From Blastocystis sp. Blastoise (lineage: Eukaryota > Protista > Bigyra: Opalinata), in contig JBBPEB010000032.1 of assembly GCA_039096225.1 (NCBI GenBank), forward strand, positions 310,001 to 374,000: DNA of 64,000 nucleotides. The letters run 5' to 3'. The position numbers were made by a program, and so were the translations under genes. The notes below the pieces were generated by a model. It saw only the letters and a program-made list of their open reading frames with translations. It was not told where the DNA came from and ran no database searches. Of this stretch, positions 1-51,815 are shown one piece after another. How positions within the stretch are numbered: the first letter of the stretch is position 1; every line of letters begins with the position of its first letter.

Positions 1-11745
<11,745 letters not shown>

Positions 11746-21796: not shown

Positions 21797-22070
21797 CGGA
21801 TAGAATATTTTATAGACAGAATTTGTTTTTAATTGTTGTTGAAATGATGGTATCAATTGTATTGTTTTTGCATTCTGTATCGAGTCTATGAACCATTTAT
21901 CATAATTAACCTGGATATATAGAGTATAGATATAGAATATGAATAATAATATATAATATATGAAAATACTTTTTTATATTGATTCATATCAATAGAAGTA
22001 AATTGAACAAACTGTGTATTCAAAACGATAGGCTTTAAATATTGAGAATAAAACCTATATATATATATTA

Positions 22071-22117
<47 letters not shown>

Positions 22118-24472
22118 GGATACTGTGAATTGCTGGATCCGACTTCACCAAATGTATATGTTCGACATATCTATAGACAGTAATGATAATAATAAACTAA
22201 GAGAATAATATATAATCATAATAATAATAATGAATTAAATAGATAATTAATATCATATATATATATATATAGAAATAATAATAAGAATAATAAATAATAA
22301 TTAGAATAATATATATCATATATATAATTATTCAAACAATAATAAATATATACTTATAACTATATAATAAATAATATATAACTATATACTTCAGGTCGAA
22401 TAATAACTCTGTTCTTTCGTATATCTGGTCTTCTTAACCAATCATCCCAATAGGCAGCGGGCCATTTTGGACCCATTTCCCGCCAAATTGTGGAGGTAAA
22501 CATCCATCCTAAACCGGGAAAAAAATCAGATCGAACTAATGTTGCTATATAATATAAATATAAATAAATATACTAATAATAATTAATAAAGTTTCTTTTT
22601 GAAAATAAGTATAATCATTATAAATAATAATAAATATTTATATATACATCAAGTAGAAGAGTATATAATAGATATTTAAAATATATAAATTTATATAAAT
22701 ACCAGGGTTACCAACAAATTCACTAAATCCATTATCATTCCAAGCAGAAGCTGCGAGAATCGTGTTATCTTCCCACAATAGTGGGGAAACCCCAGCGAAA
22801 TATTCAAAGAAATCACATGCAATTAATAGATCATCCTATAGATATATATTTAATAAAAAAAATTATAAAAATTTAATTAAATATGTATATATATATGTAT
22901 GTATAAAAAAAAAAAAGATACTATTGATGACATAATAAGTTATATATATATATTATTAAAATAAATGCACAATATTAATATTAAATACTATTTATTATAT
23001 TACATGTATATATATATAATAATAAATAATAAACTATAATAAACTATAATAAACTATAATAAACTATAATAATATACTTCAATAACAATGACTTGTTCAT
23101 AATGGAATTCATGGATTAATCGATTGAAAGCCCACCCAAAATGGCGGGCTAATTTATGATAAGGAGAATCCCCAGGGGAATATGTCTATATATATATATA
23201 TATATAATAGTAACTAAGGATTATATATATATATATAGATTGAAATGAAATGAAAATAAAAACTCTGTATTTAAAGGCAGATATTTGTATATATATATAA
23301 AGAATATAAATATAGTGAATATAAATAATTCAAAACAAATATATAATTATATATATAATAATATAATTATATATACTTGTTCATGATTCCAATGTTGATA
23401 TAGATGAATAGCTGGTATATTTTGTATTTGTATTTGTATTTGATTGATAATAGATAACATACTAGGTTCATTTCCATCTTGAGAAATAAACATATCTATA
23501 GAATATCGATTCCTTTTATCACGAAGAACGGTGAATAGTGTATTCATTGTCTTTTGAAGGTATTGAGGACGATTATATGTCATAATAACAACAGCAGTTC
23601 GACGATTTCCTATCAACTGATAAGAAGGATTATTATTATTATTGTTATTGTTATCGGAAATATTATTATCTGAGATATTATTATTATTATTATTATTATT
23701 ATTATCTGAGATATTATTATTATTATTATCTGAGATATTATTATTATTATTATTATCAATATCATTATTACCATTATTATTATTCTGAGAAAGTGATTGT
23801 ACAAATTCTTTTTCTTTTTTTTCTTCTTCTTCTATACATATATGAAATAAAAATATAATGATACATAATAATAATCTATATATATATACCTTTATCTTCT
23901 GTATCATGTATATCATTTTCTTGAATATTTTGTTTCAAATATATAGGATTCTCTTTATTAGTCTTCTGATTATGATCTATTTCATTTTCAGAAGTTGAAA
24001 TATCTCCTTTAATTGAATTAGAATCTCCATTCATATTATTTTTATTATCTTCTAACTTTACTTCATCCGTCTCTTGAGATAAATTATTATTTTCTCCAAT
24101 AGATTGAATAGTTTCTTTTGATTCAAGTTTGTTTTCTTGTTTTCTATTATTTGAAAACAAAGTATTTGTTATACCATTCATAGAAATATCGAACTCATCT
24201 TTTGAGAATACCTAGATAATATATTTAAAGTAATAAAACTAATCAAATATGTTTATCTATAAAAAATACTATATTTCTACGTAGATGTCTATCTTCTTGT
24301 ATATCCTCCTAATAGCAATATATAAAACTGCTTAAACAAATACTACACGATAGATTTGAGGTGCCAAATCTTTTATTTCTAATTGAAACACCGAACGATA
24401 AATCTGAAAGATGACACCTAACCAAAGTACCACAATGATACACAAGAAAAATAAATTCCTATAGGATTTCAT
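21541..24472 (-). CDS. MGAT1: Alpha-1,3-mannosyl-glycoprotein beta-1,2-N-acetylglucosaminyltransferase (GnT-I, GT13)
   Basis: N-terminal TM and long Asn-rich stem. Motifs YNRP, ISQDG, YHKLARH, IEDDL, SAWNDNG, RSDFFPGLGWM, WPAAYWDDWLR, RPE.CRT.TFG and GVPRGAY.G. Confidence 0.95.
22055..22123 (-). other. GT-AG intron with a U12-type 5' splice site (GTATCCTTTT)
   Basis: Junction CA|GTATCCTTTT...TATAG|G restores GSSNSQFYSQYL. No U12 branch sequence is visible. Confidence 0.5.
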
Positions 24473-31945: not shown

Positions 31946-33581
31946 ATGGAAATTGAGAAGAATTTAAATGATGAAGTGAGCGCTAAAAATGAGAAAGATG
32001 TTCAAGGCTTGCCTTGGGTTGAGAAATATAGACCTACTGAATTCGAAGAGATTGTATCTCATGATGATATCCTTTCTACAATTAATAAATTGATTGAAAA
32101 TAAGAAATTACCACATCTTCTATTTCATGGTCCACCAGGAACAGGAAAAACAACAACTATTTTAGCTTGTGCTCGAAAGATGTATGGTTCAAACTATAAA
32201 TCAATGACTCTAGAATTAAATGCTTCAGATGATCGTGGTATTGATGTTGTTCGTGATCAAATAAAAAACTTCGCAGGAACTCAGAAACTCTTTAGGTATA
32301 TTGAATAGATATTTTTTTTTCTTGAATATATATAAATTTTCTTGATAATATTATATATAGTTCAGGTGTTAAATTGATTATATTAGATGAAGCTGATAAT
32401 ATGACAAATGTAGCACAATTTGCACTTCGTAGAAGTATTTCTATTGTTATTTTTTTTTATTTGTTTTTATTATTTGTTGTTTTTTTTTATTTATTTGTTT
32501 TTATTCTATTTATTTATTTATTCTATTGATTTTATTGACTTTTTTCTTTATTAATCTTTATTATTATATATACTATTATATATATTAGTTATTGAGAAAT
32601 ATAGTCAGAATACTCGTTTTTGTTTAATCTGTAATTATGTGAGTAATATTATTCCTGCACTTCAAAGTCGTTGTACATATCCTTCTCTATATATTATATT
32701 TGAATTTTATTCTGTTTATATATATATTATTTTATTATTATGAATATATTTTATTGAATAATAATTGTCCTTTATTTATTGACTCGCTTCCGTTTCGCAC
32801 CGTTAAATGTCACAAAAATACGATCTCGTGTGGATACAATTATTAATCAAGAACAGTATGAAACTTATAATTCAATTGGCCCTATTTATTTTATTTTTCA
32901 ATATTTATAGTATATATACTATGTTCTATATAGTATAAATATTACAGAAGATGGTATCAACGCGTTATTAGAATTATGTGAAGGAGACATGAGAAAAGTC
33001 ATCAATCTTCTTCAAGTATATATACTTATTATATTTATTATATTTATTATATTTATTATATTTATTATGTTTATAATTATTCTATGTATTATTATTATTA
33101 AACTTATTATTATTAAACTTATTATTATAACCATATATAGGCAACTCACATGGCTTTTCCTATAGTAAATCAAGAGAATGTATATTTATGTTCAGGTTCA
33201 CCTTCTCCCGTGATTATTCAAAGTATTATGGATACTTTATTACAATCCTCTTTCAATGAAGCAATGAAAAAAATATCAGAAATCAAAGAATCACATCAAT
33301 TTGCACTTCAAGATATAGTTCCTTTAATTAGTAAAAAAGTTCAACAATTAGAATTACCTCCTCAAGTTCAAATCTATTTATATAAACAACTAGCAGATCT
33401 AGAGTATATATATATATATTGTTTTATATGTAATTATGTACGAGTATATACATTTTTATACTATTCTATATATTATACTAGATATCGTCTTGCTTCTTCA
33501 TGCCAAGAGTCTATTCAATTAGGCTCTCTAATCAGTATATTTATCCTTTCAAAACCTATGTTAGAAAATAATACACTATAA
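31946..33581 (+). CDS. RFC5: Replication factor C subunit 5 (yeast Rfc3 type)
   Basis: [51 protein letters not shown]|RFRFAPL and GDMRK..N.LQ. Confidence 0.95.
32677..32783 (+). other. U12-type AT-AC intron (107 nt, phase 2)
   Basis: 5' ATATCCTT, branch-like TCCTTTAT at 32768-32775 and 3' GAC. Removal restores the conserved SRCT-RFRF. No AG is available. Confidence 0.92.

Positions 33582-47648: not shown

Positions 47649-51815
<4,167 letters not shown>

Follow-up and report, generated by a model that had tools for sequence, protein, structure and literature searches.

We find that the RFC5 gene of Blastocystis sp. Blastoise is very probably interrupted by a genuine U12-dependent AT-AC intron (positions 32677-32783), which sits in one of three near-identical copies of this gene. 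Judged from the DNA, the intron answers to the definition of the U12-type AT-AC class, and the machinery that would remove it appears to be present in the genome. We base this reading on the anatomy of the intron, on homology across the junction, on the minor snRNA genes and on the occurrence of the junction in the deposited model of a paralog. Counting against it, the model deposited for this very copy (WA158_005238) keeps the intron, the branch motif TCCTTTAT carries two mismatches, its predicted pairing bulges a U, the U12 and U4atac candidates score below threshold, and U6atac carries a GCCG stretch. Coordinates without a prefix refer to the window, the whole 64,000-nucleotide stretch analysed here (~22% GC), from an assembly of 33.3 Mb in 34 contigs. 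Judging by its size, this "Blastoise" genome is probably that of Rus-B, an isolate from a Russian tortoise that Lind et al. 2025 describe with 33.3 Mb, 33 scaffolds and 23.1% GC (PMC12129017).

By sequence similarity, the host gene is the ortholog of human RFC5 and yeast Rfc3, a small subunit of the clamp loader. Its protein matches the solved structures of human RFC5 (317 bits) and yeast Rfc3 (285 bits) best, whereas RFC4 and RFC2 reach at most 191 bits, which bears out the name RFC5 given in the preliminary description. Walker A, Walker B (DEAD) and the SRC arginine finger are all found in the translation, and the precomputed Pfam matches include PF00004, PF13177 and PF08542. The gene is built as follows:

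31946-33581, plus strand: RFC5 gene model from ATG 31946 to TAA 33581, seven exons, 1029 nt, 342 aa
31946-32295, plus strand: exon 1, ATG at 31946, Walker A GPPGTGKT
32296-32360, plus strand: intron 1, GT-AG, 65 nt, junction used in WA158_005238 and WA158_005168
32361-32434, plus strand: exon 2, Walker B DEAD
32435-32588, plus strand: intron 2, GT-AG, 154 nt, at the ancient position RR|xIEK
32589-32676, plus strand: exon 3, ending in ALQSRC and AC, bases 1-2 of a Thr codon
32677-32783, plus strand: intron 3, candidate U12-type AT-AC intron, 107 nt, phase 2, 13% GC
32784-32855, plus strand: exon 4, T followed by RFRFAPLNVTKIRSRVDTIINQE and CA
32856-32933, plus strand: intron 4, GT-AG, 78 nt, at an ancient position
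32934-33015, plus strand: exon 5, INITEDGINALLELCEGDMRKVINLLQ, sensor-2 region, homologous to the Blastocystis ST3 protein
33016-33140, plus strand: intron 5, GT-AG, 125 nt, low-complexity repeat
33141-33403, plus strand: exon 6, Rep_fac_C domain
33404-33481, plus strand: intron 6, GT-AG, 78 nt
33482-33581, plus strand: exon 7, TAA stop

The exons have 28-38% GC, against 8-19% in the introns. Of the six introns, five belong to the ordinary GT-AG class and have donors of the GTAT type (GTATAT, GTATTT, GTATGA); intron 3 differs. Introns 2 and 5 are associated with low-complexity AT-rich tandem stretches (32436-32612 and 33021-33129, respectively) that match ~130 other places in the genome at 75-90% identity, in agreement with the low-complexity content of 12% reported for the tortoise isolates.

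A similarity search of the genome located three RFC5 copies that are 94-97% identical, introns included:

C21:341946-343581, plus strand: the window copy
C21:92562-94127, minus strand: copy 2, a 95% identical paralog
C4:1487066-1488712, plus strand: copy 3

Such identity, which extends through the introns, identifies the copies as recent segmental duplications. Copies 2 and 3 diverge from the window gene in the first 17 nt and the last five codons. The AT-AC intron is present in each of the three genes, at 107, 107 and 109 nt and with the same splice signals, and its copies differ by only two substitutions and one 2-nt indel, all of them interior.

The intron starts with ATATCCTTCT and ends in ...TTGTCCTTTATTTATTGAC, exon 3 closing with CAA AGT CGT TGT AC at 32676 and exon 4 opening with T CGC TTC CGT TTC at 32784. 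Excision of exactly 32677-32783 yields QSRC-T-RFRFAPL in phase 2, so that the Thr codon after the SRC arginine finger is split between the exons, while the unspliced reading from exon 3 meets a stop within the intron. The motif QSRCTRFRF varies little or not at all across ten orthologs or relatives, and together with the sequence it places the split of SRCT-RFRF at 32676/32784, to the base where the preliminary description had put it. From 32667 to 32849, that is, in the whole intron and 66 nt downstream, there is no AG, the nearest ones lying at 32666 and 32850. Hence, no GT-AG solution keeps RFRF, as had also been claimed. The splice signals are instead these:

32677-32684, plus strand: U12-type 5' splice site ATATCCTT, matching the consensus at 8/8 positions
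32768-32775, plus strand: branch-site-like motif TCCTTTAT, with 32774 (position -10) as the putative branch A
32782-32783, plus strand: 3' terminal AC, which with AT at 32677-32678 gives AT-AC termini

The 5' splice site ATATCCTT falls exactly at the boundary set by the protein alignment, with /[AG]TATCCTT at +1. RTATCCTT has 13 matches against 11.1 expected, so this 8-mer is not rare in AT-rich DNA such as this, and the motif alone proves nothing; what matters is its placement where the alignment demands it. Per site, the 8-mer has a frequency of 7.8e-5 and TCCTT, which is found 16 nt from the 3' end of the intron, one of 1.1e-3; the joint chance that both occur at the places demanded by the alignment is roughly 1e-6 to 1e-5. 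Exon 3 and the intron both close with AC, so that shifts of 0, -1 and -2 nt yield identical mRNA; of these three registers we chose AT-AC, the only one that belongs to a known splice-site class.

The branch motif agrees with the consensus TCCTTAAC at six of eight positions, the mismatches being at positions 6 and 8, and it lies within the roughly 8-20 nt of the 3' splice site where a U12-complementary branch sequence is expected. Nine nucleotides follow the putative branch A to the 3' end of the intron, a distance at the short end of the functional U12 range but not outside it. The preliminary description was right about this distance, but the label "variant" that it attached to the branch site calls for correction: the motif is two mismatches off consensus and its spacing is not aberrant. 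Its assignment of the intron to the U12-type class is upheld by the 5' splice site, the AT-AC ends and the U12-complementary branch motif, all of which were found. For TCCTTTAT and the U12 candidate, ViennaRNA predicts a duplex of -10.2 kcal/mol with 13 pairs and one bulged base. In this minimum the U before the A is bulged, not the A, and pairing is extended via UUUAUU to U12 AAUGAG. By analogy, a pairing of the canonical type would join UCCUU to U12 AAGGA, pass over a U-U mismatch, bulge A32774 and close with a final U-G wobble.

The same analogy suggests how the intron might be removed. The U11/U12 di-snRNP would bind the 5' splice site ATATCCTT via the U11 5' end AUAAAGGGC, and the branch motif UCCUUUAU would be recognised through U12 GUAAGGAA, with the sole A of the motif, at -10, as the presumed nucleophile. 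U11 would then be displaced by U4atac/U6atac.U5, and cutting after the terminal AC would join AC|T in the Thr codon behind the SRC arginine finger.

That the organism keeps U11, U12, U4atac and U6atac had been proposed from the intron, and a search of the whole genome with Rfam models, with a relaxed threshold for U4atac, indeed found loci for all four, those of U12 and of the U4atac candidate below the cut-off. The U11 candidate (62.9 bits) and U6atac (63.8 bits) score above the Rfam cut-off. The U12 candidate is full length and reaches 46.8 bits, under the cut-off of 53; its 5' region GCCUCAAACUAAUGAGUAAGGAAAC retains the branch-site-binding GUAAGGAA, and AAACUAAUGAGUAAGGAAA is conserved. 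At 29.7 bits, the U4atac candidate lies below the Rfam gathering threshold, but its 5' end CGUCCUUAUCG shows exact complementarity to CGAUAAGGACG in the U6atac of this genome. Stem II of the two RNAs has a predicted energy of -28.9 kcal/mol against -10.2 ± 2.6 for shuffled sequences, and none of 500 shuffles reaches it. Stem I has 8 pairs; a K-turn-like AUGA...GUGAG and an Sm-like site were recognised by eye. A U4atac pattern that assumes TGCTAAC matched nothing, the candidate having TGCTGAC and with it a G-U pair. In the U11, U12, U6atac and U4atac candidates alike, a box ACTTCTAATCA is found ~55-65 nt upstream of the RNA start:

L001:1441-1452: (A)ACTTCTAATCA box upstream of U12
L002 about 1672-1683, minus strand: (A)ACTTCTAATCA box upstream of U6atac
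L003 about 1680-1690, minus strand: (A)ACTTCTAATCA box upstream of U11
L013 about 1686-1697, minus strand: (A)ACTTCTAATCA box upstream of the U4atac candidate

Genome-wide, we counted 26 copies of the 12-mer AACTTCTAATCA, compared with 6 in the control, one of the 26 being upstream of a major-U6-like sequence (C21:551558); the box is probably a proximal promoter element of snRNA genes in this lineage. We accept the sub-threshold U12 and U4atac on account of their conserved functional sequences, the U4atac/U6atac complementarity and the common upstream box. On this reading the genome encodes U11, U12 and U6atac together with a U4atac candidate of low score. Some 440 nt upstream of this candidate lies a tRNA gene (66.7 bits; L013:2078-2149, minus strand).

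The one U6atac of the genome deserves separate treatment:

C21:544821-544937 (= L002:1501-1617), minus strand: sole U6atac

It reads UUGAGCCGAGAGAAGG where the Rfam consensus has aUGAAAGGAGAGAAGG, with GCCG in place of AAGG, in the stretch through which U6atac base-pairs to the CC of the donor. As such, a canonical helix between U6atac and the 5' splice site would not obviously be available, and U6atac of the tortoise clade may lack the canonical 5' splice site pairing box. Despite the GCCG, the RFC5 donor is still ATATCCTT, so that no co-variation is visible. No second U6atac came up in a search with the core AGAGAAGGTTAGCA. The extension CCUUCUCU of the 5' splice site is complementary to AGAGAAGG in U6atac (-12.5 kcal/mol), which we judged coincidental since this segment is expected to bind U12 and the extension is missing from the other candidate donors.

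Among the proteins, a C-terminal match to PDCD7 (59K) reaches 25.3 bits in Pfam, just under the 27-bit cut-off, and the best PDB match of this PDCD7-like protein is the human PDCD7 C-terminus (E 0.044). A CHHC zinc finger protein (PF05253 match, locus L006) is ambiguous between U11-48K and GTSF1; a second PF05253 match (locus L005), considered as U11-48K, is TRM13. For Blastocystis ST1, all four minor snRNAs and the full set of seven minor-spliceosome-specific proteins, namely 20K, 25K, 31K, 35K, 48K, 59K and 65K, are on record (PMC5608401).

Two deposited proteins, both 100% identical to the translation of exon 1, bear on the use of the junction. WA158_005238 (192 aa), deposited for the window copy, continues into the AT-AC intron to a stop, the mis-modelling that had been foreseen for standard predictors. 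WA158_005168 (312 aa) corresponds exactly, exon by exon and down to its distinct C-terminus, to the paralog at C21:92562-94127 and reads ...QSRCTRFRFAPL..., thus splicing SRCT|RFRF at the AT-AC junction. In the depositors' pipeline, RNA-seq reads were aligned with STAR, at least three reads were required per junction, and Mikado was tuned to "strictly RNA-seq-supported introns" (PMC12129017). Taken together, the paralog model with the AT-AC junction and the requirement for junction reads amount to indirect RNA support for the junction. An RNA run contains a fraction of 0.28 of the words sampled from a 3.5-kb stretch whose exon fraction is 0.29 (1029/3501 nt), which fits spliced RNA and is uninformative on the AT-AC junction itself. 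No full-length transcript-derived ORF of 342 aa occurred among the matches of exon 1, WA158_005238 and WA158_005168 or among the cluster representatives, and a scan of metagenome contigs for the pattern of the exon 3 3' end gave 0 matches. WA158_005168 also joins INITED|VNQENV by an alternative GT-AG junction (window 32954-33165 by homology), which drops 30 conserved sensor-2 residues, GINALLELCEGDMRKVINLLQATHMAFPI; this junction stems either from a minor isoform or from another error in the gene models.

The retention of the intron in WA158_005238 may reflect inefficient splicing of the window copy or reads that are unassignable among the copies, whose intron regions are 98% identical. It could mean that the window copy is a redundant paralog from which the intron is poorly or not removed, giving a truncated 192-aa product while the other two copies supply RFC5. 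We regard this as unlikely. Three copies do exist, minor introns are often spliced inefficiently, and the model that enters the intron matches the window copy specifically (IFEFY, against IFESY or IYEFY predicted in the others). However, the splice signals are the same in all three copies, with changes in the interior only, and all downstream exons of the window copy are intact and open. Moreover, reads are not reliably assigned to copies at 94-98% identity, so that the annotation pipeline may have produced the retained model as an artefact.

Very improbable, in our view, is removal of the AT-AC intron by the major (U2-type) spliceosome. AT-AC introns of the U2 type do occur, rarely, in animals, and the imperfect branch motif and the divergent 5' splice site box of U6atac would suit such a route. 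Yet U2-type AT-AC introns carry ATAAGT-like donors, whereas the donor here, ATATCCTT, agrees with the U12 consensus in full and differs from the GTATAT, GTATTT and GTATGA of the five neighbouring introns; TCCTT stands at a U12-typical distance from the 3' end, and minor snRNAs are present. Finally, that there is no intron at all, but an assembly or insertion artefact or the disruption of a pseudogene, is hardly conceivable: the truncated deposited model speaks for it and nothing else does, while the same insertion recurs at three independent loci with intact flanking frames and is excised exactly in a deposited, RNA-supported paralog model. We thus retain the U12-dependent AT-AC intron as the best explanation.

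Signals resembling those of the RFC5 intron recur elsewhere. In the 264 kb scanned, a near-identical 3' end follows an RTATC donor at three other places, which came from an ORF-constrained scan; the shared 3' motif was defined after these three candidates had been seen:

window 49315-49476, plus strand: SPX-EXS candidate intron, donor GTATCTGT
window 49461: 3' element of the SPX-EXS candidate, TCCTTAATTTATTCAT
L020 5316: candidate 3' element TTCTTAATTAATTTAC
L025 333, minus strand: candidate 3' element TTCTTAATTTATTTAC

The SPX-EXS candidate ends in TTCCTTAATTTATTCAT, almost the same 16-nt element as the TCCTTTATTTATTGAC of RFC5, but with AT and not AC. A Pfam search of the flanks of the three candidate introns gave no match. 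A motif-only census of AT-AC introns in the 264 kb counted 10 against 9 in a reversed-sequence control and, being no better than the control, yields no density estimate. The common 3' signature of the candidates is therefore to be taken as a lead, not a result; the tortoise clade may have a signature TYCTTWAT-TWATT-NAY, with the branch A fixed at -10 and extended U12 pairing. Another intron in the window (22055-22123, minus strand) has a GTATCCTT donor, an AT-rich ...TATATAG 3' end and no TCCTT. With normal donors here being GTAT-rich, it is probably a U2-type intron with a donor that is U12-like by chance.

As to the origin of the RFC5 intron, we mapped nine orthologs or relatives onto their genomic loci and compared intron positions. 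The sample comprises Blastocystis ST3 strain NMH, a relative from a Logan contig, Phytophthora fragariae, Capsaspora owczarzaki, Basidiobolus meristosporus, Rhizopus microsporus, Diaphorina citri, Balamuthia mandrillaris and Ectocarpus sp. An RFC5-like model from Centruroides is without the SRC region and hence uninformative. None of the nine has an intron at SRC|T-RFRF. Most share the intron upstream (RR|xIEK), the one downstream (...EK|) or both, which correspond to window introns 2 and 4; that at RR|xIEK is found in ST3, Basidiobolus, Capsaspora, Balamuthia, Ectocarpus and Diaphorina. The ST3 NMH gene (L012:1501-2668) has six introns, all ~30 nt. Four of these are at the positions of window introns 2, 4, 5 and 6 and two are absent from the tortoise gene, while window introns 1 and 3 are missing from ST3. 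Among the sampled orthologs, an ancestral exon of ~53 codons thus appears to be split in the tortoise isolate only.

A single gain accounts for this pattern more parsimoniously than six or more losses would, and it points to the AT-AC intron as a lineage-specific and fairly recent minor-intron gain, a possibility that we rate at somewhat below even odds. This reading is tempered by the reach of the sample, which extends to no vertebrate, plant, Proteromonas or further tortoise isolate, and by the fact that minor-intron loss is common; of 12 ST1 minor introns, 11 are counted as losses in B. hominis (PMC10639083). In the genome, the AT-AC intron has matches to the two paralogs and to low-complexity AT-rich sequence only, and to no repeat or transposon family.

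AT-AC minor introns have been known in Blastocystis since 2017, and the RFC5 intron adds another; it leaves knowledge of the existence of a minor spliceosome in the genus unchanged. In the literature searched, no paper links RFC5 with a minor intron, and the position is apparently undescribed. By term search, U12 introns are absent from the main text of PMC12129017, where "spliceosom-" occurs once. For curation, it matters that an essential replication gene is deposited truncated (WA158_005238) and that its paralog model falls short of 30 sensor-2 residues. If AT-AC introns are mishandled genome-wide, hundreds of models in the three tortoise-isolate genomes are probably hit, and ortholog-based comparisons built on these models would suffer. 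The intron is also a clean, datable case that bears on whether the unusual minor introns of Blastocystis, which are rich in AT-AC and show no bias away from phase 0, were recently gained or retained, its host exon being ancestrally uninterrupted.

In the canonical U12-type introns of animals and plants, the consensus is /ATATCCTT...TCCTTAAC and the 3' splice site follows after some 10-15 nt (Hall & Padgett 1994; Tarn & Steitz 1996; both cited in PMC10639083). The RFC5 intron shares with these introns the 8/8 match at the 5' end, the AT-AC termini and a motif complementary to GUAAGGAA near the 3' end. Unlike them, its branch motif TCCTTTAT scores 6/8 with a single A at -10, and its T-rich spacer TTATTGAC could extend the pairing to U12 AAUGAG by G-U pairs. 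Physarum polycephalum, for which PMC10639083 refers to a minor-intron expansion (its reference 20), resembles our case in the possible lineage-specific creation of minor introns, against the usual picture of loss only. It differs in that a single intron was examined here and that no repeat or transposon family matches it. If the gain is true, tortoise-clade Blastocystis would be the second system after Physarum that creates U12 introns. The closest comparison is Blastocystis ST1, with 346 U12 introns, typically AT-AC (Gentekaki et al. 2017, PMC5608401), or, in a later survey, 253 minor introns, of which 77% are AT-AC and 49% in phase 0, with a median of 39 bp (Larue & Roy 2023, PMC10639083). 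The RFC5 intron departs from these in its length (107 nt against that median), its phase 2 and its setting in a tortoise-clade genome of 23% GC. It agrees with them in genus, in AT-AC subtype and in the presence of a minor snRNA set, and its absence from the ST3 ortholog parallels the rapid turnover of minor introns between subtypes.
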